From NCBI GenBank assembly GCA_035221665.1, contig CM069154.1, positions 20,522,001 to 20,586,000 on the forward strand: a stretch of 64,000 bases of DNA. Direction: 5' to 3'. Source of the stretch: Okamejei kenojei. Its lineage: Eukaryota. Made by a program: the position numbers and the translations under genes. The notes beneath the pieces were generated by a model. It did not search any database, had not been told where the DNA came from, and worked only from the letters and a program-made list of their open reading frames with translations. Below are positions 9,422 to 61,714 of this stretch, piece by piece; the first letter of the stretch is position 1, and each line of letters starts with the position of its first letter.

Positions 9422-9471
9422 TCATTCGGCTTTGTGAAGTCTGCCTCCAGTTCCGGTGACAGGGTGGGAGC
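9422..9471 (-). CDS. Gene A exon 5: short cytoplasmic tail
   Basis: Strong acceptor CCTTTCTCCTCTCTGTTTCCCCACAG; phase 1 gives (S)SHPVTGTGGRLHKAE*; no tyrosine. Confidence 0.65.
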
Positions 9472-10024
9472 CTGTGGGGAAACAGAGAGGAGAAAGGTCA
9501 GTGCACCCTGCGAGGTATCCAAAGCATAAATTCATCAGTCACTGTGGTCAAGACCCACTCACTGCTGATGGCAACTCAGTGCTGTCACTCGGCTTATCTG
9601 GAAGAAATCGCTGTCACTCCTCCTCTCATCAAATCTTGATAATGTCCAACGGACTTTAGATTCACCTCTCCTGGGTTCTAGAACCTCATCTCCTGTGTCC
9701 TCCACTTTTCTACAGTCCCAGTCACTGCATCCCTCTCTCCCCTTGGTCACCTTGTCCCTCACTCCCCGCAGTTGCTATATCCTGTCAACATTCCATTATC
9801 CCAGTCCCTACCCCTCTATCAGTTTATTACCCAGTCCGTTGCTGGTCTTTATAGATTCTTGACACTGTAGACTCCTGATAGTGTGAGATAAGAAGCGAGG
9901 GAATGCAGAGTACAGAGACTCGGGACAGGGTTACAAAATACCACTTACACCAATCTCCCCCTCACTATTAACGATACCCCAGAAAAGCAAACTTTCACTG
10001 GAAACACGTAAAACCAGGACTCAC

Positions 10025-10123
10025 TGATGATGTGGACAGCAGCCATGACTGAGAGGAGACATAGGAGCAGGACGGCAGCAATTATGGCCCTCGGCCGACA
10101 TCCACAGAGACCGCTTCTCTCCC
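10025..10123 (-). CDS. Gene A exon 4: stalk plus hydrophobic (TM/GPI-signal-like) segment
   Basis: Acceptor TCTCTCTCTTTCAATAG, donor GTGAGT, 99 nt, phase 1-1; GERSGLCGCRPRAIIAAVLLLCLLSVMAAVHII. Confidence 0.8.
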
Positions 10124-10355
10124 CTATTGAAAGAGAGAGAATGACTTGTTGTAAAAATGGACCTGGGGATTGTCCAACAAACTCAGTGACAACTCGGGCT
10201 CCTCACTCCATGACAGACTGACATCAAATACCTGTGACAACACTGTCTGAGCACACAATCCAAGGGCATGGGTTAGACATAGCGTGAACCCCAACTGCAC
10301 TGTCCCATTAAATATTCCCTGTCCTCTCCTAACCCAATTTCACATTGACACTCAC

Positions 10356-10637
10356 CAGACATTGTCTGTTTACAGACGTCCTTCAGCCGAATCTCTGCCG
10401 TGCCTTCACTGCCCGGGTTCGTGGCCTCACACTTGTACACAACGTCTCCGACCTCTGCTGTGTGATGAACCTCCACTGCCTCTCCATGTCCCCTGAGGTG
10501 ATGGGTGCTGTCGTTTCCCAGAGCTTCTCCTCCCCTCCACCACCTGAAGCTGGTGGGGTCACCGGAGATCACAGTGCAGGTCAGGGTGCAGATCCCGGTG
10601 ATGTTCTGAAGCACGATGTGCGTTCCTGACACGGGCT
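10356..10637 (-). CDS. Gene A exon 3: IgC2 domain, CD2/SLAM type
   Basis: 282 nt, phase 1-1, AG/GTGAG boundaries; EPVSGTHIVLQNITGICTLTC...FRWWR...YKCEATNPGS...DVC (four Cys, CxLxC and YxCxxxNP motifs). Confidence 0.92.
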
Positions 10638-11249
10638 CTGAGGTTGGAACGGAGAGATGAAAGATGAGTAAAGGAGATCTTGTGGACCCAAGGGTCCCTA
10701 ATTCCCATCACCAACAGCCTTGGGTGAACATCTTGGGAATTCTCCCCATTTTCAGGTTTTCCTTTCACTTCCGTGAGTGGTCTCAGTGTCCTTTATTCAC
10801 CTGAGTGTGCTGCAGCTTGGACCTTCCTTGGTTCTGGCCCAAAGACAACAGCCCTGGGACTGTGATCAGCACTAACCAAGACAGGGATTGTGTGCAGTGT
10901 CCCCGAGAGAATCTGGCTCAATGCAGATCCTGGGTCACACCCAGCTCTCCCCATGGAGACATTAATTATCTCACAGAATGGATGTGCAATCAGGAAATTA
11001 ATTCAGGGAGAAAGAGCTACAAATGCACTTTCACTGAAAGACATAGATGAACAACGTAGCTGACAGCAAACAAATCACGAGGATCCGGAGATAACAAACT
11101 GAGGAACTTAACTTCTCACCAAAATTGGCTCAGACCTTGATGAGACAACCCTTTTCTTTTTCCTTTTCAAAGTGTGTGAATATTTCATGATTCCACGAGT
11201 AAATTATTACATTTACCACAATTCAGAAGATTTTTAATTAACACACTTC

Positions 11250-12850
11250 AAATGATAATACGATCATAATTATCTTGGAAGTACTTGAGCCCCTATGGCA
11301 CACTTCATTCTCAGAAGGTTTTCCAAGTGTGCTCTGATAAAGGTGATCCTTCTCCGAGGGCATATGGGCACGGATAAAACCCAGTAGAGGGGTGACCAGT
11401 CGCTTGGACAGTGCTCTCAACTCCACACCACCTGGATCCGTGAATTGCCACTTTGGCCAGGTCAGAAATGGATTACCTGACTAATCCACCTCCCTCCACA
11501 CTGTGTACCCAGAGAATGGTGCTGAAGTGCAACCAAAACTTGAGGAGCAGCTCCTTCAAATATTTTATCAGGGTCTGCAACCTCTCACACTCCATAAACA
11601 TGTAGAACACCATCTTCTCCACACTTTGAAAGTGGGGGAGGCGGGTGAATCCATGAACTGGCTTAAAAGTCTGTTACACGACAAAGCTCTGTGTAATTCT
11701 CCAGCCCAGGTCGCCACTCCTCCACTTGGGACCCCATTCTCTCTATTGGATGGCAGAACAGACCATCATAGCATATCCAAATGGCAGGTGAGGGCAAGGA
11801 AATAGAGCATGCACGAGCAACCTGTACAGGGAACAGTATTTCTGAGAAACATTTCATATTGTGTGGGTCTGACTCCTGAGAAAGGATCCAGGAGTTGGAT
11901 ACAATGTGCTAATAGACATTAAACAATAGACAATCGGTGGAGGAGTAGGCCATTCGGCCCTTCGAACCAGCACCGCCATGCAATGTGATCATGGCTGATC
12001 ATCCCCAATCAATACCCCGTTCCTGCCTTCTCCCCATATCCCCTGACTCCGTTATTTTTAAGAGCCTTATCTCGCTCTCTCTTGAAAGCATCCGGAGAAC
12101 CTGCCTCCACCGCCCTCTGAGGCAGCGAATTCCACAGACTAATCTGGCCAAGCAGGGATCAGCGCAGTCAGCATTGCTCCACTCCTGTTAGGTCCCTGGA
12201 TGTTCTTTGTGACAGAATGTTTAGAAACTAGCTACGAGTTCCAAGTGCTTACTGTGTCACTGGCCTGACTGTCTCTTCCTCTGGCCACTCTCACAGTTGA
12301 AGTGCCTTCTCTTGCTGGTGCAAAAATGCTCTGGCTGAAGGCAACCATTTTCCAAACTCTTACTAAGTTAGAAGAACCAAGCAAGTCCCACAGAGTGACT
12401 TGGCTGCTATAGTTCTCCTGAAGACAGTGTTCTTGGCCGAACATATATGTTACCAGCACCCACCATCTGGAAGGATGCTCAATGTGAAGGTACTTCTGCA
12501 AGTGCAAAGGCCTAGAGTCACCACGTGGGTACAGTCACACACCATTGAATGACCGAACTTCTCAAGAGGAGACTCAGAGCCGCAGCAGAGAAACAGTCTT
12601 TCCTGTTGCCCCAGAAGAAATCCACCAACTTCCTCTGGTTCTTGGCAGCAAAGGTGAAAGAAAGGGCTAAAATGGCCAATCGGTACCACAACATGAAGGT
12701 AACCAAATGGTGCATGTCTTGGTAGGTAAACAATTAGAGTAGCCTGGATCTGCACCCTAGCCAGGCAAAGAACTTTCATCTCCAAGCCCGGCTAGTTCAC
12801 TGGCCAGATTTTTTCATTGGGGCTCAGATAGATTAGGGAAAAGGGGTGCA
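11250..12850 (-). mobile_element. Degraded L1-clade (Tx1-like) LINE fragment with a nested CR1 tail (~11915-12140)
   Basis: LWYRLAIL...QRKLVDFFWGNRK...SAAALSL and a C-terminal GFIRAH remnant. Confidence 0.55.
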
Positions 12851-13514
12851 CAGTGCTCAAAAAATAGGTTGTATCTCCTCCAGCATATCACTGATCTACC
12901 AAGAGTCTGGATCTCTGGGTTAGACCAGACTGGGGTAGATTCAGACTGCATTGGAAGCAACAGGCACATTTCTGTTCATTGGATCACACAGCACAGAACC
13001 AGCCCCCCCAACCCACTATGCCCATTCTTGTCATGGGTAACTATCTATACTAATCCCAATGACCTGGACTTAGTTAACATCTATCTAAGCCTTGACGATC
13101 CCATCTAAATCTCTTACCCCTATCATCTCCACAGGCAAAGTTTCCCACTACCTACCAGATATGTCTCATAATTTTGAAAGCTTTGCACTCATCCTCCACT
13201 ATTCCAAGGATAATTCAGCATATCCAGACTCTCACTGTTACGTTTCACCAAGAGCTCCCCTCTCCCCCATCGTCAATGCAGAACGCTCTGCCCTCGGGAG
13301 AGGCCTGATCTAATTCCCCCACATCCACATCTCAGTCTGAGGAAGGGTCCCGACCCAAAATGTTACTCAACCTTTTTCTCCAGAGATGCTGCCTGACCCG
13401 CTGAGTTACTCCAACACTCTTCAGCGGGAAGGTACGGGACCTGCCCCACCCATTTAATTAAGGCTGTTTCAGAAGCCAGTGAAGCTTGGACCCCTCCACA
13501 ACAGTCTCACTCAC

Positions 13515-13835
13515 CGTACACCTCCAGTCGGATTCTTGATGGAATTTCAATTCCTGAACGTGTAATAACTGTCACCTCATAATCACCAGCATCCTCTCTC
13601 CGGAGATCACGGATTTCCAGACTTAAACTCTTGGGATGAAAAGTCATCCGTCGCCGGTACTCCTCAGTTCCGAAGTATGCAATATTCCCCTTTGAGAATT
13701 CTATTATTTTGCTTCTGAGAGATGTTTTCCTCCACTCAATCTTGCCAATGTCCAGTCCACCTGCAATCTCAGGAGATAAGGTGATCGAGTGCCCCAGTGC
13801 TCCGTTCACAGTGGGAGGGAGAGCCTCAGTCCCAG
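13515..13835 (-). CDS. Gene A exon 2: IgV domain lacking the canonical disulfide (CD2/SLAM family)
   Basis: 321 nt, phase 1-1, TTAG|CT...TACG|GTGAG; VNGALGHSITL...IEWRK...SLEIRDLRREDAGDYEV...RLEVY; no Cys. Confidence 0.93.
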
Positions 13836-15284
13836 CTAAGGAAGCAAGAGAGGCAGTCAGCAAAAGAGCTCTATGACTAGGGGAGGAGGAGCTAGGAGAG
13901 TCAATGAGCACAGGAGCAGGTCATGCGGACTGTCGCCTGGCTCCCGGCGCTGTGAGAGACCGGCCCACAGTCCTTACATCACACAGTGAGCCAAAGGGAG
14001 GAACAGAGTGAAGACTCTCTGCTCCCAGGCCTGAGGAAGGGAGTTACAGCCCACAGCCAGATATCCATCGATGGGTCAGGGGGCCACAGATGGGACCCAG
14101 TTCAGAAAAGGACTGTTGCATTGGGGAAGTTGAACATTACGAGAAAATGGGGTAAATGGAAAGAGATGGGCATTATGAAGCTTTCCACTAATAATATTTC
14201 ATGACCTTTCTTTACTCACCCCTCCGCCACTTCACCGATTTCTATTTTAAATATCCTCTATATTTGCTATACCCCTGAAGCTCTCTCCTGCTTTCAATTC
14301 TCTGTAGCTGTCATTTACTCATTGACTTTCTTTATCCAGCCTTTTGATATTTTTGACATCCGGAGTTCATTGCCTTTCACCCAATGGGAACGTTAGACCT
14401 GAACTCTCATTATTTCACTTTTGGATGATTCCCACTTGTGACACCACACAAGTTGCTCCCAGTGTAGTTTTGCCAGATCCAATCTCATGATATTGAAATC
14501 ACATTCCCCAATCTGTATTCCTTTCCATAACCATCAAAAAAAACTTGCGGTCTTTTGGTGACTGTTAAAGCTCCCCTGGGCTCACTTTAAAAGCTACCCA
14601 CCTCTTTGCCTTTCACACCAATAAGATCTCAACAATGCTGGAGAAGATGAAATCCCATCTGACAGGAGGCCTATGGCAACTGGGATCAAGCAAATCCCTG
14701 AGATATATTAGAGTACGCTGAAGCGGGAAATCAGGGTGCAAAAAGAGGACATGAGGAAGCTCTGGCAGACAATAATGGAAATTCATATATAATCAAACTA
14801 TACCCAAGGACAGCAAAGAGAAAAATGTTAGTGGGCTGAATATAGTTCTTAGCTTTATAGCATTACAGTTTCAGAGAAAATGTCCAATGTCCACAATAAG
14901 ATAGGCTGGAGACATGGGACTGCACCCTAGTTTATGGGAGAATTATTCCAATGTTTGATAACAGAGGGGAACAAGCTGTTCCTGCGTCCGGTAGTACATG
15001 CTTTCAACCTTTTTAAATCTACTGCCAGATGGAAGTGGGGAGAAGAGGGAATCACAGGGAATTACACATAAACATTGGAGTGTTATGTTAGAGCTGTACA
15101 CAATCTTTGTGAGGCTACACTTGGTGTATTTTGTTCAGATTTGGTCATCCTGCTATAACAAAGATGTAGGGTGTAGGTTTAACGTCAGAGAGGAAAGATT
15201 TAATAGGAACCTGAGGGGCAATTTTTTTCACACAAGGTGGTAGATAAATAAAACGAGCTACCCGATGAAGTAGTTGAGGGAAGT

Positions 15285-16500
15285 ATGAATGAATGAATGA
15301 ATAGTTTATTTCGGTCATACATTAAAAAGAACAAAACGATACAATCTGTGTGATTATGAACCAACACTGTATCCATTTCACACAACGTTCACATAATCAA
15401 TGACCGAAAAAGAAATAGGCTGAAGCCAGAAAGCATGTTTTTGCCTCTCCTATACAATCCATAAGATAACCCAGAATATCAGCATTACAAAGGAAAGAAA
15501 AAAATAAAATTTACTCTAAATTGTAATCCTTACTTCTTTTACATTTTAATCATTTTACATTATAATCCTTAATTATTTTACATTTTAAGGCTTTTTTGAA
15601 TCTCAACAGAGAGCTACAAAGTTTCAACTCATCACTAAGCCCGTTCCATAATTTGACTCCCAAAACTGAGACACATCTATATTTTACATTGGTTCTCACT
15701 TTACCTGTTTCAAAAACACACAACCCTCTTAAATTATAATGTCCTTCTCTTAATTTAATTTGTTTTTAATACTAACAGGAAGGCTTTTATTCCTAACACG
15801 GAAAAGTATTTCTAATGTCTTTACATGAACAATATCGAAAAATTTTAAGGTACCGGACTTTATGAATAATGGATTTGTAGTTTCATGGTAAGAAGCTTTA
15901 TGTATTATTCTAAAAGCTCTTTTCCGGAGTTTAATTATAGGGTCTATCTTTGTTTTATATACATTTCCCCAAATACAATATGACATATATGGCATTATAA
16001 GCGAGCAATACAATATATATAAACACTTCTTATTCAACAGATCCTTTGTTTTGTAAAGAGTAGCAATGGATTTAGATAATTTCCATTTGATGTATTCTAT
16101 ATGTGGCTTCCAACAAAGTTTATGATCTATAATTACTTCCAGGAATTTTGTTTGATATGCTCTTTCAATTTAAATTCCATTTAAATTCAATTTTATTTCA
16201 CAATTAACCCTGTCGCCACCAAACACCACAGATTTTGTTTGATTTTCATTAAGGGATAATCTATTAATATCAAACCATTTTTTTAGCACTATCAATTCTC
16301 TTTCTGCTGTTTTCAATAGTTATTTTATATCATTCCCTGAACAAAATACATTTGTATCATCCGCAAACGTAACAAACTTCAACGTATTGGATGCTTTACA
16401 AATATCATTTAAATAAAGTATAAATAACTTAGGTCCCAGTACTGAACCTTGTGGAACACCACAGGTTACTCTTCTAAGCTGTGATTCAGTATTATTAATT
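15285..16500 (-). mobile_element. AT-rich 5'-truncated CR1/L2-group LINE with few lesions, in gene A intron 1
   Basis: GVPQGSVLGPKLFILYLNDI...FADDTNVF; (TTCA)n 3' tail after AATAAA. Confidence 0.8.
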
Positions 16501-17223
16501 TTTAATTAGTACAATAATAAGTACAATAACAAGATTGAAAAGACATTTGGACATATATGTGGATAGGAAATGTTTAGTGAGGTAATGGAAAGTCATGGGC
16601 AAATGGGACTAGATTGGATGACACATCATGGTCAGCTTAGACGAGTTTGACCGAAAGAGCCTGTTTTCATGCTGTACGATTATGATATCAGTGGACCCAG
16701 CATTAATTCCAGTGGGTACACAGCTGGTCACAAACCTCCAATCTGAAAAGTAGCTCTTTGCTCCCACCAGCTAACTCCTTTTTGCATAACAACTAGAAAT
16801 TCATTTGGTTAGCTGACCTTGGCTTCCATGTGATCTAAACTTCCGGACTTACCTACTATACAGGACCATGTGAAAGGCCTTGTTAAAGTCCACTCAGACA
16901 ACGGCCACCTGTCCTCATTTTGGTGACCACTTAAAAAAAAATTGAGAGATGTGATTACCCACACACACAGCCAGGGTGACCCTATTCAGTCCTGCTGACT
17001 ATTGGGATGCCAATTATAAATCTATGTGGAAGATCCCCGAAAGGTCTACGAAGAAGAAAAACCCACATGGGTTCATTCAAAGAGCCTTCTATGGTATGCT
17101 CCCTCAGTGGAACCCTGAACTAATATTGCAATGTCTGCTCCTCTTTTAAATCCTCCTTCCCCATCACTCTTGAAGAGTTTAGTTCCAGTTCTGGAAAATA
17201 GAAATAAATCCACTCAGAGAGGG

Positions 17224-17233
17224 GGAAATGAAA
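17224..17233 (+). promoter_or_regulatory. EICE-like motif GGAAATGAAA in gene A intron 1
   Basis: GGAANNGAAA ~30 nt from the leader donor; conserved in two paralogous copies. Confidence 0.5.
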
Positions 17234-17262
17234 TAAAATGACTCGCTCAGAATGAAACTCAC

Positions 17263-17317
17263 GGATTGAGCCGGGGAGAGACAGCCAGAAGAAGATCAGC
17301 AGGCACCAAACATCCAT
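17263..17317 (-). CDS. Gene A exon 1: signal peptide
   Basis: AAAAAG ATG G start; MDVWCLLIFFWLSLPGSI + C; donor GTGAGT; phase 1 joins exon 2 in frame. Full CDS 55+321+282+99+50 = 807 nt (268 aa). Confidence 0.88.
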
Positions 17318-17528
17318 CTTTTTCTCAGCAACCAGTGTGAAGTAGACACCTGATCTGTCCCGATAGACACCTTCTCTCTTCAGTAAAGTTGTCAGACTCC
17401 TGGACTCACACAAGGATGGAATTGGTGCAGTGGAGCAATGTGAGAGAGGACAGAGGGCGACTTCCCTCAGTCTCAGCACCCTTCCTATCCCGCTGCTTCT
17501 GTGCAAGTGAAACAATCGAGATAGATGG

Positions 17529-17537
17529 ACAGGAAGT
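17529..17537 (+). promoter_or_regulatory. ETS site ACAGGAAGT upstream of gene A
   Basis: Consensus ETS core ~210 nt upstream of the ATG; missing from the aligned gene C flank. Confidence 0.4.
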
Positions 17538-17774
17538 CAGTGTGGGAGGAGGCAAGTTCACAATAGAAGCCATAAAGCAGTGGCAGACACAACATAGTTC
17601 AAGGGTGAGCAGAATCTCTCAATTCAAGAGCACTGTTTCTTCTTGTTCTGGTGGCTCTCCTCATGTCACCTGGCACATCCCAAATGCTGATCCATATCAC
17701 AGCCCCCTAGAGAACTAAGGCTGGTTTATCTCAGCTCCCCCCCCCCCCCCCCCCCCCCTTCAGCCTCGACATCC

Positions 17775-20700
17775 ACCAGGATGGTGCTTTGAGGGGTTGG
17801 TTATGGAACACATTAAATCCAGTCTACCAAGCAGCCATGACTCACTGCAGTTCACCCATTGCCACAAGAGGTCTATGGCTATTGCCATCTCTCTGGCCCT
17901 ACACTAATCCCAGGAACAACTGGATAAGTGAGACACCCAATTCACACTTCTATTCACATACTACAGCTCTGCTTTTAATATCATTCTCCCATCCAAGCTC
18001 ATCATCAAACTTGCGGAAACCTGGAGTCAGCAATCATCACTACACATGGATCCGGGAATTCCTAACCAACAGACCCCAATCAGTGAGGATATGGGACAAA
18101 TCATCCTTTATTATAATCCTGCATTATCAGCCCCCTTCTTTAATCCTTACGTAGAAACATAGAAACATAGAAAATAAGTGCAGGAGGAGGCCATTCGGCC
18201 CTTCGAGCCAGCACCACCATTCATTGTGATCATGGCTGATTGTCCGCCATCAATAACCTGTGACTGCCTTCTCCCCAGATCCCTTGATTCAACTAGCCCC
18301 TAGAGCTCTATCCAACTCTCTCTTAAATCCATCCAGTGAATTGGCCTCCACTGCCCTCTGTGGCAGGGAATTCCATAAATTCACAACTCTCTGGGTAAAA
18401 AAGTTTGTTCTCACCTCAGTCTTAAATGACCTCCCCTTTATTCTAAGACTGTGGCCCCTGGTTCTGGACACCTAACATTGGGAACATTTTTCCTGCATCT
18501 AGCTTGTCCAGTCCTTTTATAATTTTATATGTTTCTATAAGATTCCCCCTCATCCTTCTAAACTCCAGTGAATACAAGCCTAGTCTTTTCAATCTTTCCT
18601 CATATGACAGTCCCACCATCCCAGGGATCAATCTCGTGAACCAACGCTGCACTGCCTCAATCACAAGGATGTCCTTCCTCAAATTAGGAGAACAAAACTG
18701 TACACAATACTCCAGATAGAGTCTCACCAGAGCCCTATACAACTGCAGAAGAACCTCCTTACTCCTATACTGAAATCCTCTTTTTATGAAGGCCAACATT
18801 CCATTCGCTTTCTTCACTGCCTGCTGTACCTGCACGCAAACTTTCAGTGACTGCTGTACAAGGACATCCAGGTCTCGCTGTACCTCCCCCTTACCTAACC
18901 TAACCCCATTGAGATAATAATCTGCCCCCTTGTTCTTGCCGCCAAAGTGGATAACCTCACATTTATCTCCTCTTCACAGTTCACACTGCCACCCAGCTTT
19001 GTGTCATCCGCAAACTTGCTAGTGTTGCTCCTAATTCCCTCTTCCAAATCATTAATATATATGGTAAACAGTTGCGGCCCCAACACCGAGCCTTGAAGCA
19101 CTCCACTCGCCACTGCCTGCCATTCTGAAAAGGACCTGTTCACTCCTACTCTTTGCTTCCGGTCTGCCAACCAATTTTCTATCCATGTCAACACCCTACC
19201 CCCAATACCATGTGCTCCAATTTTAGTTACCAGTCTCCCGTGCGGGACCTTATCAAAGGCTTTCTGAAAGTCTAGATACACTACATCCACTGGCATCCCT
19301 TCATCCATTTTACTTGTCACATCCTCAAACAATTCCAGAAGATTAGTCAAGCATGATTACCCTTTCATAAATCCATGTTGACTTGGACTAATCCTTTTAC
19401 TACTATCCAAATGCCCCAATATTACCTCTTTAATAATTGACTCCAGCATCTTTCCCACCACCGAAGTCAGGCTATTCCCCGTTTTCTCTCTCACTCCTTT
19501 CTTGAAAAGTGGGATAACATTATCTATCCTCCAATCCACAGGAGCTGATCCTGAATCTATTGAACATTGGAAAATGATCACCAATGCGTCCACTATTTCT
19601 AGAGCCACCTCCCTGAGGACCCTGGGATGCAGACCATCAGGCCCAGGGGATTTATCATCCTTCAGTCCCGTTAGCCTACCCAATACTATTTCTCACCTAA
19701 TGAACATTTCTTTCAGTTCCTCTACCCCCTTAGATCCTCTGTCCTCCAGTACATCTGGGAGATTGTTTGTGTCCTCCTTAGTGAAGACAGATCCGAAGTA
19801 CCTATTCAAATCTTCTGCCATTTCCTTGTTGCCCATAATAATTTCACCCATGTCTGCCTTCAAGGGACCCACATTTGACTTTGCTACTCTTTTTTCCCTT
19901 AACATAGCTTTTACTGTCCTTCTTCATATTCCTGGCCAGCTTCCCCTCGTACTTCATCTTTTCGGCCTGTATTGCCTGTTTTTTTTTTTCCTTCTGTTGT
20001 CCGATGAAAGTTTCCCAATCCTCTGGCTTCCGGCTACTCTTTGCTGTGTTATACATCTTTTCTTTTAGTTTTATTCTATCCCCAACTTCTCTTGTCAGCC
20101 ATGGTTGCCTCCTACTCCCTTTAGAATCTTTCTTCCCTTTTGGACTGAAATGATTCTGCGACTTCCGGATTATGCCCAGAAATTCCTGCCATTGCTGTTC
20201 CACCGTCATTCCTGCTAGGATCCCTTTCCAATCTACTTTGGCCAGCTCCCCTCTCATGCCTTCATTGTCCCCTTTGTCCAACTGCATCACTACAACTTCC
20301 GATTTAACATTCTCCTTCTCAAATTGCAGATTAAAACTAATCATATTATGTATCCATGACTGTGCAACAAAGCACAAATTCAATTCAATTTACAAATTAG
20401 AGGACGACACCACCGTAGTGGGGCTTGTATCAAATAATTATGTGATGGGATGCAGGAAGGAAATTGAGAATCCCATGACCTGTGGTCAAGATAACAACCT
20501 TTCTCCCAATGTTATTAAGGCAAAGGAGATAGTGATTGACTTCAGGAAGTGAAGCGGTACACACACCCAGGTATACATTGATTGTGCTGAAGTAGAGATG
20601 GTTGAAATTTTCAAGTCCCGGGGAGTAAATATCACCTGCAACTTGTCCTGGACTAGCCATATCACAACAATGGCCAAGAAAACACACCAACACCTCTACT

Positions 20701-20830
20701 TCCTTTGAAGGCTTCGGAACCGCTCACCAACCGCCACTGATGCGCCGTAGAAAGCATTTTATCAGGATGCATCACAGCACGGTTTGAAACAGCTTCACCC
20801 AAGACGGCAAGAAATTGCAGAGAATCCTCC
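17775..20830 (+). mobile_element. Degraded Rex1/Babar LINE split by a CR1 insertion (pieces ~17775-18120 and ~20350-20830)
   Basis: WIREFLTNRPQSVRI on the left; HDCATKHKFNSIYKLEDDTTVVGL...KEIVIDFRK on the right. Confidence 0.7.
18152..20348 (-). mobile_element. 5'-truncated CR1/HER1 LINE, relatively young
   Basis: KSPGPDGLHPRVL, VDVVYLDFQKAFDKVPH, QGSVLGP, FADDTKLGG, FFTQRVVNLWNSLP; (TTTCTATG)n tail at 18152-18174. Confidence 0.92.
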
Positions 20831-21298
20831 AATTTTCCGACACCTCACCCGTGACTAACAATGATGCATACATCTCATCCAGGGCTCCTGCAATTTCTTC
20901 TCTAGTTTACTAGTGTTCTTGGGTATATTGGATCAGGCCCTGAAGATTTTTTTACCTTCATACATTTTAACATGTCAAGCACCTTCTGTAATGCCCAAGA
21001 CATCCACATTAATTTTTCTGAGTTAATTCAGGCTTCTGTCTTTCTCTATTTGTAAGATCGAGAGGATAAATATTAATTGAGGACCTCATACATCTCTTGT
21101 GCCTCCAAACTTAAATGTCCAGTTTGGTCTTCGGTATTCTCTCCTTTGTTCCTATTTTTCATATTGCACATTTGGACCAGTTTCTCGATCTTTGTAATAA
21201 AAAGGAACTGCTGATGCTGGCTTATACCAAAATACTGGAGTAACTCAGTGGGTCAGACCTTTCTCCAACATTTTGTGTTTATATCTGTTGTCTATTGT

Positions 21299-29870: not shown

Positions 29871-29924
29871 AAAACAACTTCACTCTCGATGGGCCATTCT
29901 GCTGCATTTTATCTTCCTTTTATT

Positions 29925-39400: not shown

Positions 39401-39419
39401 AATCCTGCACGATTGTTTC

Positions 39420-44970: not shown

Positions 44971-45189
44971 CTATAAAGGGTGGGATTTTCCATGGGCTCG
45001 TCCTCTACCCTTGATTGAGGCAAAGTGTGGGATCCCAGAATAATTCACTGTTTCATACTCTTGGATCATGCTCTCGCTGGGGTTTCTGTGCCCTCCTCTT
45101 TTGGCTGGTCCAGAAACTGGCGTCACAGGAGATTTCACTGTGTCATATATGGTGCAAGGAATTTCCAGCCTCTCCTTGTTCTGAGCCTG
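44971..45189 (-). CDS. Gene B terminal cytoplasmic exon with ITSM
   Basis: Acceptor CTCTCTCTGCTTTCTCAG|CAG (NAGNAG); phase 0; QAQNKERLEIPCTIYDTVKSPVTP...MIQEYETVNYSGIPHF...SHPL*; TIYDTV at 45136-45153. Confidence 0.85.
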   Translation of the reverse strand, partial: QAQNKERLEIPCTIYDTVKSPVTPVSGPAKRGGHRNPSESMIQEYETVNYSGIPHFASIKGRGRAHGKSHPL

Positions 45190-46141: not shown

Positions 46142-46230
46142 CATCTCGTTCTCCTCCCGAGGCTGCCTGTTGTCTGGATGTCTCTGTGGTGGATGGGGTT
46201 GTGCGTAGATAGTCTCTATGGTTGAATGGT
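46142..46230 (-). CDS. Gene B cytoplasmic exon with ITSM-like TIYAQP
   Basis: Acceptor CTTCTTACTCTCCCCCACAG, donor ATG|GTAAAG; 89 nt, phase 1 to 0; DHSTIETIYAQPHPPQRHPDNRQPREENEM. Confidence 0.8.
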
Positions 46231-46680: not shown

Positions 46681-46818
46681 CTCCAGTGACTAGAGCATTT
46701 TCACCGCCTCCTGTTCTTCTCCCTACGAAGATGCAGACCAGCAAAATGATGAGTACAGCTGCAGAAGCCGCAACAACCGAAATAATTATAATTATATTCC
46801 CTGTTGGTCCCCTTTGTC
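46681..46818 (-). CDS. Gene B transmembrane exon
   Basis: Acceptor TTCTCTGTTGTTTTAG; GQRGPTGNIIIIISVVAASAAVLIILLVCIFVGRRTGG...; donor AG|GCAAGT after 46681, or GT alternative ending at 46705; both phase 1. Confidence 0.85.
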
Positions 46819-52694: not shown

Positions 52695-55194
52695 GAGGGG
52701 TCATTGTTTGTTTTTCTTTCTGTTATTAAACCATTACTATTGTTAAAATATGTCATGTTTGAATGCATTAATTTTCTCACTCGTCCTTGTCAATTGATGC
52801 AGCTGTGACGCGTGGACTCGTTCCTCAGCATGAAATTCACAGATCCTTCAAAGTCTTCACGTAGTCACGTGACTCAGAAGTAAAATAGTAAGATTAAACG
52901 AGAACTTACCGATTTGAAGTTTGATCGTTATTTTGTGAGGAGTTACGATGAGGGATTACGTGCCCTCCGCAACTGCAACATAGCATCCCAACTTCTATAT
53001 TGAATGCCTATACTGATAAACGGCAGCATGCCAAAATCCTCCTTCACCACCCAGTCAACCTGTGAAGTTATTTTCAGGAAACTATGTACTTGTACTCAGT
53101 CCCTCTGTCGTACGAGACCCTCCAGGGATCAATGTTATGATACATTGATTAAGCCACAGCTGGAATATATTGTGTACAATTCTGGCCATCCCACGATAGA
53201 AAGGGTATGATTTCACTGGAGCAATGCAGAGGAGATTCATCAAAATGTTGTCTGGGATTGAGTGTTTCAGTTATGAGGGGAGACTGGATTGGTTGGGTTT
53301 GTTTTCTTTAGAGTGGAGGAGGCTGAGAGTGGAGGAGTGCAGTTATAGATGCACCACATTATGAGGGACTGAGATAGGGGAGATAGTATGAATAGATTTT
53401 TCTAATAGAAGATATATATTTAAGGAGAGTTGTGTGGTTGTAGAGGATCAGTGGAAGATTTGTTTCGCCTGGAGGGCAGACAAAATCTGAAACACACTCC
53501 CTAAGAATGTGGTTGGGGCAGATATTCTCACAGTATTAAAGCGTTTGGGCAAGGGCATATATTTCCAAGCCTAGAAAGCTATGGATCAAGTACTGGTCCC
53601 ATTGAGCCGACTATACGAACACTTAAAACAACGCACTACCAGCCTCAGGACTCCAACTCAGGAACAGCTGAGTCAGACTACTGAATGGTCCACCCATAAG
53701 CCAGGTATAATCCTGATCTTCCAATCTACCACATTGCCAACATTGGACTTTTTCTTTGAAACTAACATTACAATGCTGCAAATTCTTTAGTTCTTTAGTA
53801 ACTTGTCAGTTTCTTTGTTGAACTAAATTAAGGCGCATATTGCAATCAAAAGCTCTTGAACAATGGGTTGGGAAGAAAGCCAAACTGTAAGAAAGAGGGC
53901 TGCATTCTGGTATTTTTATTTTTGCTTGTGTATAGCTTGATTGTAGTTATGTATGTTTAAGAAGGAACTGCAGATGCTGGAAAATCGAAGGTAGACAAAA
54001 ATGCTGGAGAAACTCAGAGGGTGAGGTAGCATCTATGGAGTGAAGGAAAAAGGCAACGTTTCCGGTTGAAACCCTTCTTCAGACTGAAGTTATTTATTGT
54101 ATGATCTGATTATTAATTGGATAGCATGTGAACAATAGCTTTTCACTGTATCTCAATCCATGACACAATAATAAACCAATCCCAAATGGGATTAGTGTAT
54201 ATGGGTATTGATGTGGCATGGACATGCTGGGCCAAGGAGCCTGTTTCTGTATGACATTATGACTGCACTCTCTTACTATTCTTCCTGCAAAAATGAACAA
54301 TTTAACGTTACCCACATTATTCTACATTTGCTAAATCCTTGCCCGCTCACTTACCTTGCCTTATTATCCATGAATAGTTACCTTATGTCCACTTCATAAC
54401 TTACTTTCCTACGTTTTGGGCCTTTTCCATGAGCTATGTTAAAATTCATATACTAGTGGAGGCTCCAGAAGGAGCCCTATGGCAATATTATATGTTGTTC
54501 ATTTATGCCTACTCTGTTTCCTGCTATCCTGCCAGTCTACTGTTCACTTCAACACAAATCCTGCTGCACTACAAGCTTTTATTTTCTTCAATAACTTTTG
54601 ATGGAACATCTCCATCAAATGCCTTATGGAAATCTAATAACAGTGCACCTTCATTACTTTCTGTTCCTTCTTGTTTGTAACAAAGTGCCCTAAGACACAT
54701 CTCTTCCCTCAGTGACTCTCTCTGGAGCTAACTTATTTCACATAGATTCAAATTGCAATTTCACTTTTTGTATTTTAGACCCACCCAAGCTTGCAGGTCT
54801 GTTCAGCATGATGTTGAATAAAGGTTTGAAATCCTACAGTTCCAGCATGGAACTGTAATTCTCTCTTCTGTAATTCATCTCCTATTTGTACCTTCTACAG
54901 TCAGCTTCTGTACAGGAAACAAGTATTCACCATCTCTCAGCCAGCACCACCATCACCTCTGTTATGTTTGTCTCACTGTCGCTATCATTGGTATTCTCAC
55001 TGTATTTCCGATTCCACCTTTCTGTCACATAAAATACATTTGATTTCTAATTTTTCCAATTTCTGACATAAAATCTTCGACCTGGAATGTTGTTTATTTT
55101 TTTCTTATATCATTGGCTGGTGAACCTTCGGAGTATTTCCAATATTTTCTGTTTTTATTACACATTTCCAGTATCAGCAGTGTGTTTCACTCAC

Positions 55195-55476
55195 CAGGTG
55201 TGGCCTGTTTGCAGTCGTCCGTCAGCAGGATCTGTGCCGTGCCCTCACTGACCGGGTTCCTGGCCTCACATTTGTACTCAACGTCCCCGACCCCTGCTGT
55301 GAGATGAACCTCTATCGTCTCTCCGTGTCGCAGGGGGTGATGGGTGCTGTCGTTTCCCAGAGCTTCTCCTCCCCTCCACCACCTGAAGCTGGTGGAGTCG
55401 CCAGAGGTCACGGAACAGGTCAGGTTGCAGATCCCGGTGATGGTCTGAATCTTAATCTGTGTTCCTGCCACGGGCT
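55195..55476 (-). CDS. Gene B IgC2 exon
   Basis: 282 nt, phase 1-1; EPVAGTQIKIQTITGICNLTC...YKCEARNPVS...DDCKQATP; ~72% aa identity to gene A C2 by manual count. Confidence 0.92.
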
Positions 55477-56729
55477 CTGAGGTTGGGGCAGACAGAAGAA
55501 AGATGAGTAAAGGAGATTCTTGTGGACCCCACGATACCCAACACCCTGTCTCCAGCAGCCACAAGTGAACAATCCCAGCTCATTTCCACCCACCAGTTTA
55601 ACTCTTTTCTCTCCCCCCCTTCAGTTCAGCGAGTTGTTGCTGCACGAAGTCCACACGTGATGCGCCCCCTTCCCGACTACTGCCCGCAATCATCCACCAA
55701 CTCTCCACCATGTCCTGTTTATGGCTCTGTATCATAAGTGATAGTAGAATTAAACCATTTGGCCCAACAAATCTACTCCGCCATTCAATCATGGATAATT
55801 GAACCTGGGGATTCTATCCAGATACAGGGTTTTTTTATCATTTCCGCTAATGGTCCCTGAGTCCCTTATGCACCTGAGTGTGACCCAGCCCAGACTGGGC
55901 CTGAACCTGGTCCAAGAGAGTCAGCCCTGTGACTGTAATGGGCACTGACCCAGACTGGGATAGCGTGCCATGTTCCAGAGTGAATCCAGCACCCTGCAGA
56001 TCCTGGGTCACACACCCTCTCCCCCACAGAGACTGAAACAGCTCACAAATCGCGGGTGTAAATAGCAAGTTATTCCCAGTCTTGTGATGGGACACATTCT
56101 GAGAGGGGAACCAAGGTATCAGAATGGAGAAAATGTCACAAGGGACAGAACAGAGATCTGTGGCTGCAGAGTCACCCTCACTGAAAGCAGATACATGGGC
56201 AGGGAAATCTCCTGATCACTGCCCCCCATCCTCAGCGGATGAACTTGTTCTCCCCCATGTTGGACCACACTTAGAATGTGTCCGAGACCAGCAAAGGCCA
56301 GAATGTCCTCTAGGTGGGGATTTCAATGTCCAACGTGGGAGTGGGTTGGTAACACCTCCACCTGGCCATCCCCAAGCTACCAGTGGCAGGTGCATCTGTC
56401 CCTGACACTTTTGATGAGAGTTACCACTGTAGTCCTTGTGGAGACAAGTCTGGTCTTCACAACGAAGGCTCATCCCCATCATATTGTGTGGCACCTACAA
56501 TTGTGCTCAATGGGAGAGGCTCAGAAGAGATCATGCAGCTGCCAACTGGGGTCCATGCGGTCCTGCGGACAGCAGCAGAACTGTCCACCACGCAGTCTGT
56601 AACCTCATGGTTCACTCCACCATTCCTGTCACCGAGGGGGTCAACCCTGGTTCACTGAGGGGCACAGAGGACATGAGGAAGCAGCACCAGGTGGAATTAA
56701 ACACAACAAGGTGCCAACCTGGTGAAGCT

Positions 56730-59010
56730 GCCGGAGTATAACAGAGGATAGTTCGGGAAGCGGCAGTGACGAGGGACGTTAAGTGGTGGTCCGACCAGTC
56801 AGAGGCCATGCTGAAATGTGCACTGACAGATGTCGATTGGATTATGTTCCAAGCAAGTTCCAGTGACGTCAGTGAGTTTGCGGAAGCAGTCACGGACTTC
56901 ATCGCAACAATAACCGACAACATCGTCCCCACGGTGAGGGTAAGCACCTTTCCGAATCAAAAACCCCGGGTGGACAGGTCCGTTCATGTTGCCTTGAATG
57001 CTTGCACCACTGCCTACAGCTCGGGCCTGGCATCCGGAAATATGGACGTCTACTATCGACTGCGAAGGGCGGTGAAGGACGCAAAAAGGGGGTACAGGAA
57101 CAAGATGGAGTCGCAGATGGAGCAGCAGGACACCAGACGCCTGTGGCAGGGGCTACGGACTGTAACCAACTACCGGAGCAGCCCCCCCCAACCGGAAGTG
57201 CCGGCACCTCCCTAGCTGATGTCCTGAACTCGGGGGGGGGGGGCTGCTCCGGTAGTTGGTTACAGTCCGCAGCCCCTGCCACAGGCATCTGGTGGCCTGC
57301 TGCTCATTTCGAGACGGGAAACATCACCCCAGGTCTGCCGACTAGCGACAACACCGCCAACATGCTGGCTATCGAAGCAGAAGGGAGGTCCATCGCCGGG
57401 GATGTGCACACATTCTCTTTGTCTGAGCACGATGTGAGGAGGGCTCTGACACGGGTGAACACGAGGAAAGCTGTAGGCCCAGATGGCATCTCGGGGCGAG
57501 TACTTAAGTCTTGTGCTACGCAGCTAGCTCCGGTGCTCACTACAATATTCAACCTCTCCCTGGCCAGGTCCAAGGTCCCTGCCTGCTTCAAAAGATCCAT
57601 CATTGTACCTGTACCTAAAAATGCCTCCCCAGCTTCTCTGAATGACTACCGTCCGGTGGCCCTCAGCTTGGTAGTCATGAAATGCTTTGAGAGGCTGGTG
57701 AAGAAACATCTGCGCCTTCCTCCCTCACAACATGGACCCACTACAATTCGCATACCGTCCGAACAGATCCATGGATTATGCGGTATCCCAGGTTCTGCAC
57801 ACCGCTCTCTCTCACCTTGACAGTCAGAAGGGGGGCTATGTGAGGATGCTGTTCATAGACTTCAGTTCAGCCTTCAACACGATAGTCCCCACCAGACCTG
57901 CTGAGAAACTGGTGGAATTGGGGCTCAACACCCCCCTGTGGGTCCTGGACTTTCTCGTCGCCAGGCCCCAGTTAGTCAAGATGGGAAGAAATACATCAAA
58001 GTCCCTCACCCTGAGCACAGGATCCCCCCAGGGTTGCGTCCTCAGCCCCCTACTGTACTCCCTGTACACACATGACTGTGTGGCTCGGTTCAGCTCCAAC
58101 TCGATAATCAAGTTTGCTGATGACACCGTGGTGGTGGGCCTGATCTCGGACAACGATGAGAAGGCCTACCGGGAGGAGGTAGCTGATCTGGCATTCTGGT
58201 GTCAGGACAACAGCCTCCTCTTGAATATCAAAAAAACTAAGGAGCTGGTCAAGGACTTTAGGAGGGCACATCATCCGAGGATGTACACGCCACTGAAGAT
58301 AAATGGGGATACTGTGGATAGGGTGAGCTGCTTTAAATACCTGGGAGTCCACATCTCAGAGGATCTGACATGGACATCACACAATGCAACACTGGTGAGT
58401 AATGCAAGGCAGCGCCGTTACCACCTCAGGCAATTGAGGAAATTCAGAGTGTCTCTGAGGATCCTCCAGTGCTTCTACTCAGCGGCTGTGGAAAGCATTT
58501 TGTCCGGAAACATCACAATCTGGTTTGGGAATTGCTCTGCCCAGGACAAGAAGGCTCTGCAGAGAGTAGTGCGCTCGGCCGAACGCACTATGGGAACTCC
58601 ACTCGCCCCCCTGCAGGAACTATACATCAGATCCAGAGCCAACAAGATCATGGGAGACCCCTTCCACCCCAGCAACAGACTGTTCCGGCTGCTACGGTCA
58701 GGCAAACGCCTCCATTACCGTGCTATGAAAACTGAGAGAAGGAGTTTCTTCCCAGAGGCCATTAGGACTATAAACTCCTATCTCACCAGGGACTAACTTT
58801 ACTGTACCAATTTATTGTTGTGTGGTGTCTTTTTAAAATTGCTATTTTTTCTTTTTTTTCCTCCCACAAATATGTAATATGTGAACATGTGAATCTGTTC
58901 CATTCTGTTTTGTAGTTTTTTTGCACAATCCGCAAGCATTGCCACTTTTCATTTCACTGCACATCTCGTATGTGTATGTGACGAATAAACGGACTTGACG
59001 ACTTGACTTG
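56730..59010 (+). mobile_element. 5'-truncated Rex1/Babar LINE, young, in gene B intron 2
   Basis: [65 protein letters not shown]; (gactt)n tail. Confidence 0.92.
57120..57305. repeat. 70-bp inverted duplication (hairpin) inside Rex1
   Basis: 57120-57189 vs 57236-57305 are reverse complements with 3 mismatches. Confidence 0.9.
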
Positions 59011-61396
59011 ACAGAGGACGACATGCGAGCTTATCAGCAACAACAGCCACAAAAAAAAGAGCTGAGGGACCTCGCAGCCTATGGCTCAGGTCACAGCTCT
59101 ACAGGCCTACTACATCTGGACATGAATAGTGGTGGGCAATTCAACAGCTCATCGAATGCAGCAGCCAAAAAAGCATCCCCATCCTCAGCAATGATGTGAC
59201 CCAGCATGTGAGTGCTGGAGACAAGGCTGATCATTTACAACCATGTTCAGTCAGAGTGCTGGAGTTGATGATCTCTGTTCTTCTGATATCCTACTGTCAC
59301 AGAAACCAGTGTCCAGACAATTTAGTTTACTCAATGCAAAATCATGTTTATAAGTTATAGGAGCAGAATGAGGCCATTTGGCCCATCAAGTCTAAGCCGC
59401 CATCTAATCACATTTGATCTATCTTTCCCTCAAACCCATTCTCCTGCCTTCTCCCCATAACCTCTGACACCTGTACTAATCAAGAATATATCAATCTCCA
59501 CCGTAAAAATATCCATTGACATGGCCTCCAAAGCCTCCTGTGACAATTAATTCCACAGATTCATCACCTTCTGATAAAATAAATTCCTCTTCATCTCCTT
59601 TCTAAAGGTACCGTATGTCCTTTTATTCTGAAGCTATGGCCTCTGGTCCTAGACGCAATCATTAATGGAAGCATCTTCTCCACATCCAGTCTATCCAGGA
59701 AACAGCAGATAGCCCCTATACATATCCAGCTCCAGGCAACATCCCAACTATAGTACTGAAGACCTGTACTCCTGAAGTCGTGGCACGTCTGGCCAAGTTG
59801 TTCTTGCAACATTGGTATCGAGTGACAATGTGGAAAGTTGCCCTCATGTTTGCAGTTCAAAAACAGGATGAATCCAATCAGCTGATCACCTCCCAATTGG
59901 TCTACTCTTGATCATCAGCAAAGTGAGAGAAGTTATTGTTGACACTTTTATCAGGCAGCACTTACTCACCATTAACCTGCTCACTGACGCTGAAGATCTT
60001 ACCTGAAGATCTCATCACGGCTTTGGTCCAAGACTGGAACGAAAAGCTGAGTTGCAGAGATAAGGCGAGGCTGACAGTCCTCAACATCAACGCATTGTTT
60101 GACTGAGTCTGACATTAGGGAGACATTGTAAAACTAAAGTCAACGAGGGTTAACACTCTGACGTGGCGTCACACCTCACACAGAGGAAGATGGTTGTGGT
60201 CATTGGAGGTCAGTCAACCCAGCCATAGGTCATCACTGCAGGTGTTCCTCAGGGCAGTATCTTGGGCCCAACCAGCTGCTTCATCAATGACCTTCCTGGC
60301 ATTGTAACGTTTGACTGATGATGGCACAATGTTCAGTTCCATTATCAACTCAACTGCATGCAGCAGGACCCAGAAAACATTAATACAGGGGCTGATAAGT
60401 GGGAAGTTTTGCAACCACGTGATGGAAGTGTCAGCAGGAGATAGCCCAGTGCTTGAGGCTCAATGATTCTCCCAGCAGCAAGTCCCACATTATCAAAACA
60501 ATGGAACAGCAACTCAACAATACTAATTACACATACTCTGTGGCTACTGGAGAAAGTTTGAGACTAGGTATCCCGTAGAAGTGAATCTTTTCCTGACACC
60601 CTGACCTTTCCCCAACTACAGGGCACTCGGGAGTGTAAGGGAACATTCTTCAAATACCTGGGTGAGTGCAGCTCCAACATCCCTCGAGAAGTTGCCATCA
60701 CCTGCAACTGAAGCAGCTGCTTAATCAGATCCCTACCCACTCCCCTAAATACTCCCACCCTCCGCCAGCCTAAGCACTTCCTCCCCCATCCTAACATCAT
60801 CCTTCTGCCACTCTAAGCACTCCCACCAACACCCCAAGCACTCCCTCTGTCAAATCCCTAAACATTCCATCCCTCTAATGATCAGCCATGATCATATTGA
60901 ATGGCGGTGCAGGCTCGAAGGGCCGAATGGCCTACTCCTGCACCTTTTTTCTATGTTTCTATGAATGGGATGAAGAAGGGACTCTACCCCAAACGTTGCC
61001 CATTTCCTTTGCTCCATAGATGCTGCCCCACCCGCTGAGTTTCTCCAGCATTTTTGTCATCCCTCTATCAATGTGGGTGGTGTGCATGTAATGCAGAAAA
61101 TTCACCAGGGAGCCTGGAGGAAATTCCCTTCCCCATGGAGCAGTGGGAACGTGGGAACCGTTGACGGTTTGATGCTTCACCACGGCCCCTGGCCCAATGA
61201 CCGGGGATGTGGTGGGCCTGTCCCCCAGCCTGGCACTGCCCCAGTCCCACTACACTGGGACCGGGACCCCCACTCTGCACACTGCCAGTCAGTGGGGTTC
61301 AGTAAACTGGGGGACGCACAGGATCTGCCCTCGCCCATTAATTAGAGAGGTTCAGGAGCCGGTGGAAGCCGGGACGTCCGCCGCAGTCTCACTCAC

Positions 61397-61714
61397 CGTA
61401 CACCTCCAGTCGGAATCTCGCCGGAGTTTTTTCTCCTGAACTTGTAATAACAAGCACCTCATAATCACCAGTGTCCTCTCTCCGTAGATCACGGATTTCC
61501 AGACTGAAGTTCCCGCGGTGAAGAGTTACCCGTCCCGTGTAATTGGTGTTCCAGTAATAAATATTCTCATCCATGTACTTCGCTATCCTGGTTCTGGGTG
61601 ATTTCCGGCTCCACTCAACCATGGCAACGTCCGGTGTGACTGTGACCCCAGCAGGTAAGGAGACCGAGTGTCCCCGAGCTCCGGTCACGGTGCCAGTGGC
61701 GGCCCCGGTCCCAG
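61397..61714 (-). CDS. Gene B IgV exon lacking the canonical disulfide; leader exon lies beyond the window end
   Basis: 318 nt, phase 1-1; VTGARGHSVSL...VEWSRK...NFSLEIRDLRREDTGDYEV...RLEVY; flanking introns align with gene A. Confidence 0.93.

Follow-up and report, generated by a model that had tools for sequence, protein, structure and literature searches.

Are two neighbouring immunoglobulin receptor genes of a skate a receptor and its ligand, or two members of a larger family whose signalling ends have long been separate? This question is raised by genes A and B, both of the CD2/SLAM immunoglobulin-receptor type, which are neighbours on the minus strand of a 64,000-nucleotide stretch of Okamejei kenojei DNA (assembly GCA_035221665.1, contig CM069154.1, positions 20,522,001 to 20,586,000; called the window in the following). 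The window contains no N and no masked stretch. Mammalian SLAM-family receptors tune lymphocyte and natural killer (NK) cell responses, and the deep history of the family is poorly charted. We conclude, with a probability of about 0.7, that A and B are two same-strand members of the CD2/SLAM family with old tail lineages, that the IgV domains of this family follow a pattern of turnover and pairing between tail types, and that a counterpart receptor, though at less than even odds, is the foremost reading of A.

Exon structure of genes A and B

On the minus strand, six-frame open stretches and tblastn with candidate exons revealed a pair of IgV-like exons, at 13.5-13.9 kb and 61.4-61.7 kb, together with a pair of IgC2-like exons at 10.3-10.7 kb and 55.2-55.6 kb. 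The search of this strand for open exons bounded by AG and GT recovered exactly the architecture that the first-pass annotation had claimed, with IgV exons of 321 and 318 nt and IgC2 exons of 282 and 282 nt in A and B. All four are in phase 1 at both ends and have polypyrimidine-AG acceptors and GTGAGT donors. The IgV exons encode no cysteine and each IgC2 exon encodes four. Pfam matches were V-set for both IgVs (E 9e-9 for A, 1.8e-11 for B) and Ig_3, I-set and ig for the IgC2 exons. Searches were run exon by exon, and the public orthologues P0188 (for A) and P0217 (for B) stood in for the whole proteins.

Gene A consists of five exons with 807 nt or 268 codons. The coding part of exon 1 (17263-17317, found by pattern search and reading) encodes the leader MDVWCLLIFFWLSLPGSI and ends in phase 1 with the donor C/GTGAGT; its ATG at 17317 lies outside gene A as annotated before and had been overlooked. 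The IgV exon (13515-13835) and the IgC2 exon (10356-10637) are followed by an exon of 99 nt (10025-10123) with stalk cysteines and the membrane segment ERSGLCGCRPRAIIAAVLLLCLLSVMAAVHII, and by the coding part of exon 5 (9422-9471) with the tail SHPVTGTGGRLHKAE and the stop codon TGA (9424-9422). After the membrane segment A reads S-SHPVTGTGGRLHKAE and stops, which amounts to 16 residues without tyrosine. The start coordinate 9422 and the tyrosine-free tail of 16 residues, both proposed earlier, are borne out by these models.

All five exons of A are reproduced, exon for exon, by three RefSeq models of Rhinoraja longicauda, P0188 (XP_078276540), P0240 (XP_078276542) and P0239 (XP_078277109). 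In the region of the leader the identity is 86-87% over 71 residues for P0188 and P0240 and 89% for P0239, which begins at the methionine of A; the junction between leader and IgV (..SIPG/TEALPP) is identical. The IgV of A is 92% identical to the first IgV of Amblyraja radiata P0186 and 88-90% identical to the Rhinoraja models, and the IgC2 is 77-85% identical to the latter. For the membrane exon 66-68% was found by tblastn and 81% in the alignment, and 14 of 15 tail residues are identical to P0188; the ending RLHKAE also occurs in sawfish and stingrays. At the outer edge of the membrane segment stands a basic residue; a serine and a histidine are conserved inside it, and the stalk has two to three cysteines. 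The basic residue is a conserved arginine (lysine in sharks) immediately before 21 hydrophobic residues, and the histidine stands three residues from the inner end. A glycosylphosphatidylinositol (GPI) anchor was ruled out for A because a conserved hydrophilic tail of 16 residues follows the hydrophobic stretch.

Signal-peptide-like stretches, ALLLTASLASLAG (13836-13873, minus strand) in A and ALLLTASLVSSAG (61715-61748, minus strand) in B, lie in frame directly before both IgV exons and have an upstream acceptor in common. The relatives of B include this stretch in the protein; A retains it as a relic (13868) and uses its separate leader. Two leader types seem to exist in this elasmobranch family. 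A leader that would begin at the ATG located 60-70 nt before the IgV exons (MTCS../MACS..) was rejected, as the intron would measure 43 nt.

For gene B the IgV exon (61397-61714), the IgC2 exon (55195-55476), a membrane exon (46681-46818) encoding GQRGPTGNIIIIISVVAASAAVLIILLVCIFVGRRTGG... and two tail exons were identified. Tail exon 1 (46142-46230, DHSTIETIYAQPHPPQRHPDNRQPREENEM) encodes DHSTIETIYAQPHPP..., carries TIYAQP and ends in phase 0. Tail exon 2 (44971-45189) reads QAQNKERLEIPCTIYDTVKSP...QEYETVNYSGIPHF..., with TIYDTV and EYETVNYSGI, and closes with the stop codon TAG (44973-44971). IgV, IgC2, membrane exon and both tail exons are reproduced by Amblyraja radiata P0241 (XP_032898511) and P0217 (XP_032898512). 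Identities to A. radiata P0217, P0241 and P0008 are 74-77% for the IgV and 82-88% for the IgC2. Tail exon 1 is 59-71% identical to its counterparts (tblastn of P0217, P0208 and P0241), and tail exon 2 is 92-93% identical to A. radiata P0217 and P0241 and 81% to Rhinoraja P0208. Since the Rhinoraja models match the exons of A and the Amblyraja models those of B, the DNA is that of a skate, in line with the cartilaginous fish presumed from the letters alone.

The tail of B contains the immunoreceptor tyrosine-based switch motif (ITSM), TxYxx(V/I), which is absent from the tail of A. In the motif scan TIYDTV at 45153 was the only well-set TxYxx(V/I/L) of the window; TIYAQP has proline at position +3 and is non-canonical for an ITSM. 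Exon models and motif scan thus agree with the earlier assignment of an ITSM tail to B and a short tyrosine-free tail to A. The end of the B tail, EYETVNYSGI (44995-45060, minus strand), on which the first-pass annotation was silent, combines YxxV with VxYxxI, which resembles an immunoreceptor tyrosine-based inhibitory motif (ITIM), and is conserved in skates, sawfish and stingrays. A candidate exon at about 46070-45998, between the two tail exons, was rejected because of a stop codon in the required phase.

A first exon of B, similar to MWHFYLRRIP, was not found in the window. The relatives of B begin with MWHFYLRRIP-SLLCASLIAFCVAG, and the homologous LLLTASLVSSAG lies directly before the IgV exon, where residues of the signal peptides of P0217, P0208 and P0009 can be aligned with it. 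Because of this homology and of an alternative acceptor at 61747, by which LLLTASLVSSAG would be added, the IgV exon of B may have 351 nt (33 nt more) rather than 318 nt. A weak match to the start of the B-type leader, MWVFLLRR (17045-17068, minus strand), lies in intron 1 of A; with E 0.35 it is at chance level, and it has no convincing donor.

Assignment to the CD2/SLAM family

With the IgV of B, phmmer found 346 matches among 1.8 billion representative proteins. The 20 of these whose names were checked all belong to rays, skates, sharks or chimaeras, with skates nearest. The relatives are named in RefSeq as SLAM family member 5-, 7-, 8- or 9-like, Ly-9-like, CD48-like or 2B4-like, and less frequently as HEPACAM-, NCAM2- or CEACAM5-like. 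No protein identical to A or B of the window was found in the database search.

As a disulfide-free N domain and ITSM-like motifs also occur in CEACAM proteins, the family assignment was put to the test. A cysteine-free IgV that scores as V-set is a feature of CD2/SLAM proteins which CEACAM shares, so that it does not discriminate alone. The four cysteines of the IgC2 are invariant in 25 family members. A profile of these 25 two-domain proteins was compared with the PDB and matched SLAMF6 with 65.7 bits in one envelope over IgV and IgC2; in the alignment (2if7) all four IgC2 cysteines were matched. The CD48/CD2 chimera reached 64.9 bits and CD2 about 61 bits. Per envelope, CEA reached 37.0 and CEACAM1 35.3 bits, their totals deriving from repeated domains, and in the alignment with CEA no cysteine stands opposite the first IgC2 cysteine and the last lies beyond the aligned stretch. 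The AlphaFold model of P0188 has a predicted local distance difference test (pLDDT) score above 90 over the IgV. With this model the top eight Foldseek matches were CD48/CD2, NTB-A, CD2 and CD58 (E 1e-14 to 4e-12), and CEACAM1 was found at rank 11. The nearest ESM Atlas clusters are SLAMF8, SLAMF9, SLAMF5-like and CD48; all ten clusters are SLAM or CD48 and none is CEACAM. Precomputed Pfam matches to Receptor_2B4 and SLAM are found across the family. Thus profile, predicted fold and ESM Atlas agree with the earlier proposal of CD2/SLAM rather than CEACAM or HEPACAM.

Some observations could be read as evidence that the family is instead an elasmobranch branch of CEACAM. CEACAM proteins also combine the disulfide-free N domain with IgC2 domains, ITIM/ITSM tails and paired-receptor evolution, which is the subject, to judge by their titles, of PMC2832619 and PMC5112662. 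The single IgC2 exon of B matches CEACAM1 best (E 7.6e-6 compared with 0.098 for SLAMF6), CEA reaches the same profile score as SLAMF6 when its envelopes are summed (68 bits), some members bear the names CEACAM5-like or HEPACAM-like, and a CEACAM homologue was reported from expressed sequence tags (ESTs) of Leucoraja erinacea (PMC3628338, PMC4079198). However, SLAMF6, CD48/CD2 and CD2 outscore CEA and CEACAM1 per envelope, the four IgC2 cysteines all align with SLAMF6 and not all of them with CEA, and neither the fold ranking, the Pfam matches nor the ESM Atlas clusters favour CEACAM. A single-disulfide IgC2 of the kind that is called type A or B in CEACAM proteins, with CEACAM domains as best match, was not found in this family. 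A CEACAM origin is therefore regarded as very unlikely.

The nearest known systems are the mammalian ITSM receptors SLAMF1, 3, 4, 5, 6 and 7 (e.g. NTB-A/SLAMF6, 2if7, and CD84, 2pkd). They likewise are type I membrane proteins in which a disulfide-free IgV precedes an IgC2 with four cysteines, each domain being encoded by its own phase 1 exon. As in B, TxYxxV lies in a tail split over small exons, and they give the best profile and fold matches. Their identity to the elasmobranch model is only about 21-24%. B differs from them in the first motif, which ends in proline (TIYAQP), and in the additional ITIM-like VNYSGI. SLAMF8, SLAMF9, CD48 and CD58 have, like A, the same ectodomain plan without tyrosine motifs, and ray orthologues of A are named SLAMF9-like or SLAMF5-like in RefSeq. 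In contrast to the lipid-anchored type, A possesses a true membrane segment followed by a hydrophilic tail that is conserved, and it is thus not of the GPI-signal kind; the conserved basic residue, serine, histidine and stalk cysteines of this segment are a feature of A.

Old tail modules and probably exchanged IgV domains

According to the first-pass annotation, A and B arose by local duplication and have alignable introns and unrelated membrane and cytoplasmic exons. At the DNA level the two genes are 71% identical in the IgV exon and 84% in the IgC2 exon, and the similarity extends to about 250 nt upstream (75%) and about 100 nt downstream (69%) of the IgV and to about 220 nt upstream of the IgC2 (73%). 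Nothing could be aligned downstream of the IgC2. Hence the introns are alignable near the exon flanks but not elsewhere. The membrane and tail exons of A and B are indeed without similarity in tblastn. At the protein level the IgVs are 50% identical, with 0.37 non-synonymous (dN) and 0.37 synonymous (dS) substitutions per site and dN/dS of 0.99. For the IgC2 the identity is 72-74% (dN 0.15, dS 0.28), and the dN/dS of 0.53 indicates constraint on this domain.

Roughly 6-16 proteins of the family, isoforms included, are predicted per batoid species, most of them on one chromosome-sized contig, which supports the presumed lineage expansion. When the membrane and tail part of a stingray protein served as query, the module, which reads ERSCLCGCRLRATIIAVLLLILLSVTVAVHIISSRPGTGAEGRLHKAE, was recovered from Hemitrygon, two Mobula species and Pristis. 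The membrane exon of A is 69-78% identical to the short-tailed proteins of Pristis, Hemitrygon and Mobula (P0158 and P0155-P0157 among the batoid matches). This exceeds the 51-56% of the IgV and is similar to the 66-79% of the IgC2 in the same comparison. Skates have two short-tailed genes, the lineage of A (..RLHKAE) and a second one (..RPHKTE; A. radiata P0198, Rhinoraja P0191). The counterpart in sharks (lamniforms, e.g. Cetorhinus and Carcharodon, and Mustelus) reads C..C.K followed by LTISVIVLTSLLSVIVIVHVIS and has the landmarks of A, namely a cysteine in the stalk, a basic residue that immediately precedes 21 hydrophobic ones, a central LLS and a closing V.VH(I/V)IS. Among 241 proteins the short-tailed module was found in elasmobranchs only; word searches detected it in batoids and lamniforms, and they say little about its absence elsewhere. 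The end of the B-type tail, ..EYETVNY(S/P)G(I/V)P...GKS.P(L/I), was found in Pristis, Hemitrygon, Hypanus and Mobula.

Since counterparts of either tail type exist in sawfish and stingrays, the split is an old one and did not come about by duplication at the level of skates. The lineages of A and B had thus separated before the batoids diverged from their common ancestor, and A and B represent two old lineages defined by their tails rather than a recent duplicate pair. Two proteins from outside the window, P0181 (Hypanus) and P0185 (Mobula), are predicted short-tailed isoforms without membrane exon, in which the IgC2 is joined directly to the ..PGTGAEGRLHKAE tail; these are possibly soluble forms.

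The IgV domains follow another pattern. In trees of 119 sequences (quick) and 41 sequences (careful), the IgV of a short-tailed gene had, in seven species, the corresponding domain of a conspecific ITSM gene as its sister, with identities of 73-95%. Support is given as bootstrap and Shimodaira-Hasegawa-like approximate likelihood ratio test (SH-aLRT). The identities were 95% in Hemitrygon (98/93), 84% in Hypanus (98/94), 90% in Mobula hypostoma (90/78), 73% in Pristis (100/99) and 93% in Cetorhinus (97/73). In Mobula birostris (88%) the short-tailed IgV forms one 95/88 clade with the ITSM gene, and in Rhinoraja P0191 pairs with the B-tail protein P0208 (88%) within a 100/98 species clade. In the approximately unbiased (AU) test a single clade was rejected for the short-tailed IgVs (p 8e-10) as well as for the B-tail IgVs (p 8e-60). 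The IgC2 domains group by lineage more than by tail.

The pairing within species is as expected from gene conversion or exon exchange between paired receptors; exons shared by the transcripts of one locus could also yield it. Identities of 84-95% rather than 100% argue for separate exons. The IgV of A itself forms, together with P0186 and P0188, a long branch of skates only, and the IgV of B groups with P0217, P0008 and a Rhinoraja group that includes the second short-tailed gene. The latter is 69% (Rhinoraja P0191) and 70% (A. radiata P0198) identical to the IgV of B and lies outside the window. The near-identical ectodomains typical of paired receptors are thus found in other species and not in the A and B of the window.

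Function of A and B and further traces of the family

B is modelled as a type I receptor in which IgV, IgC2 and membrane segment are followed by a tail, about 110-120 residues long, containing TIYAQP, TIYDTV and EYETVNYSGI. If SLAM receptors, PD-1 and CEACAM1 are taken as analogues, the tail tyrosines would be phosphorylated once the IgV is engaged, and SH2 proteins of the SAP/EAT-2 or SHP/SHIP type would be recruited. In this comparison B looks like an inhibitory or switchable receptor. A would be a counterpart receptor, signalling through a membrane partner or assembled with one. The repeated occurrence of near-identical IgVs in short-tailed and ITSM genes, which is the pattern of paired receptors, makes a counterpart receptor the most likely role of A, still at less than even odds. 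A passive ligand or decoy is not what the stronger conservation of membrane segment and tail, compared with the IgV, suggests for A; a conserved membrane segment with polar landmarks is better explained by a receptor that is assembled with a membrane partner. Coupling of A to a signalling adaptor is possible, at somewhat less than even odds, given a basic residue at the membrane edge and no NxxR. A non-signalling ligand or decoy, like CD48 or SLAMF8 and SLAMF9, is the next best reading of A, and an unlikely one. As a tentative extension, on which we would not rely, the elasmobranch CD2/SLAM genes may form a paired system in which an ancient short-tailed module, with its stalk cysteines, outer basic residue and ..LLS..V.VH(I/V)IS motif, is adaptor-coupled and repeatedly acquires the IgV of ITSM/ITIM neighbours by exon conversion; the skate copy of this module would be A, with an IgV that diverged afterwards.

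Several points weigh against the interpretation of A as counterpart receptor in an old, tail-defined family. To our knowledge, no mammalian SLAM member uses an ITAM adaptor, ITAM being the tyrosine-based activation motif of immunoreceptors. The basic residue of A stands at the edge of the hydrophobic stretch and not in its core, and A lacks the NxxR motif that PMC4536121 describes for receptors coupled to FcR-gamma. The membrane segments of sharks are only about 30% identical to that of A, so that homology there rests on the motif. The trees are made up of elasmobranch and chimaera sequences only, and the groups for the AU test were named only after the first tree had been seen. The gene models of the relatives are automatic predictions, and P0186, P0009 and P0191 are visibly fused or truncated. 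Three small sequencing runs with the same species label covered none of the exons in the region 9200-14700, only the interspersed repeats at 11.9-12.1 kb and 13.3-13.4 kb, which bears neither way on expression. Furthermore, as the donor of the membrane exon of B is GC and not GT, part or all of the B transcripts might end in a short read-through tail.

This donor leads to the question whether one or both genes are non-functional as modelled, with B having only the read-through tail or with A or B being a silent copy. The junction between membrane exon and tail reads ..LVTG/D.. in A. radiata P0217 and P0241 and in Rhinoraja P0208, and the window has G/GCAAGT at this position (46681). Reading through yields GGKYLIPSP and a stop, the exact end with which Rhinoraja P0009 is modelled. 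A decayed copy of the IgC2 and a leader whose donor is broken also occur in the window, and the sequencing runs mentioned above cover no exon. On the other side, all exons of A and B have open frames and intact sites, the last exon of B has retained its motifs along with its high identity to A. radiata, the IgC2 is under constraint, and a second, phase-compatible donor (phase 1, G/GTGAAA) is available at 46705, 24 nt upstream of the GC donor. Vertebrate GC-AG introns function when the donor otherwise matches the consensus. The ITSM tail of B is very probably made, and loss of function of either gene is considered improbable.

Similarly improbable is the proposal of the first-pass annotation that A and B evolved independently into a receptor/ligand or receptor/decoy pair comparable to 2B4-CD48 or CD2-CD58, A binding B in trans or soaking up its ligand and not signalling itself. 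The genes are adjacent on the same strand with a common ectodomain plan, A lacks tyrosines where B has an ITSM, and the ESM Atlas places the class of A nearest to clusters of the short-tailed SLAMF8, SLAMF9 and CD48. Heterophilic pairs arose within the mammalian CD2/SLAM family, and an interaction of this kind is that of SLAMF2 with SLAMF4 (PMC4718992). However, A and B are not sister genes, only half of their IgV residues agree, and the IgV of B is nearer to that of another short-tailed gene. The conservation of the membrane and tail part of A across batoid orders (69-78%) would not be needed for a mere anchor. As each species has many members of the family, of which A is one, adjacency singles out no pair, and nothing specific beyond adjacency was found for this one. 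Complex prediction for the IgVs of A and B gave 0.00 in two runs, below the mark and without controls, and counts neither way.

Comparable systems are known from other lineages and families. In Xenopus, CD2/SLAM genes underwent a lineage expansion with diversified signalling ends, and FcR-gamma coupling was suggested for some (Guselnikov et al. 2011, Immunogenetics 63:679, as cited in PMC4536121). The activating members in Xenopus carry NxxR, and the elasmobranch short-tailed class has a basic residue after a Cys-x-Cys stalk instead. Paired families such as CEACAM1/CEACAM3-like, KIR, LILR/PIR and SIRP likewise combine near-identical ligand domains with distinct old tails. For CEACAM this is, to judge by the titles, described in PMC2832619 and PMC5112662. 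Here the scaffold is CD2/SLAM, and the IgVs of the window's A and B are not alike.

A and B are ordinary members of a known family, and their orthologues have already been predicted automatically in RefSeq. In the literature searched, the SLAM family of cartilaginous fish appeared only as a label in a map of the elasmobranch MHC (major histocompatibility complex), which lists slamf genes (PMC10751288), and as the skate EST filed as CEACAM (PMC3628338, PMC4079198). The modular, paired-receptor-like evolution of the elasmobranch family is not described there. The window and the public models together point to a large elasmobranch family in which tails are old modules and ligand-binding domains are exchanged or homogenised across tail types. 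If the short-tailed class is adaptor-coupled, a paired inhibitory and activating logic on the SLAM scaffold would date to early jawed vertebrates. The adaptor-coupled short-tailed module would then be an activating SLAM arm that is absent from mammals.

Apart from A and B, the window contains only fragments of the same family and retroelements. A third IgC2 copy is present as an inverted pseudo-exon (4800-5090, plus strand) that is interrupted by the stop codon TAA (4878-4880) and frameshifted by one inserted nucleotide near 5026; its acceptor is retained. It lies within a copy of about 1.3 kb (3713-5035) that is inverted, 80% identical to the IgC2 region of B, and tail-to-tail with gene A. 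This copy comprises the IgC2 exon of B and about 1 kb of the upstream intron. Downstream of A and of the inverted copy, the search for further ITSM exons yielded a lone TKYQEI (5908, plus strand) without exon context. A leader-like exon of the MD..CLL..WLSL type, MDIRCLLSCFWLSLSISI, was found at 647-700 (minus strand), with AT instead of GT as donor and 83% identity to the leader of Rhinoraja P0211. The blocks around the two leaders (602-873 and 17218-17530) are similar, and the leader at 647-700 would belong to a further gene of the family to the left of the window.

Retroelement remains with RVT_1 and RNase H matches fill the introns of B and the 27 kb between B and the leader of A. They were located at 18.4-20.4 kb (minus), 48.8-52.5 kb (plus), 49.9-50.4 kb (minus), 56.7-58.8 kb (plus) and 62.6-64.0 kb (minus). 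Short repeats at 11921-12140 and 13333-13418 have many copies in the window and huge depth in the sequencing runs.

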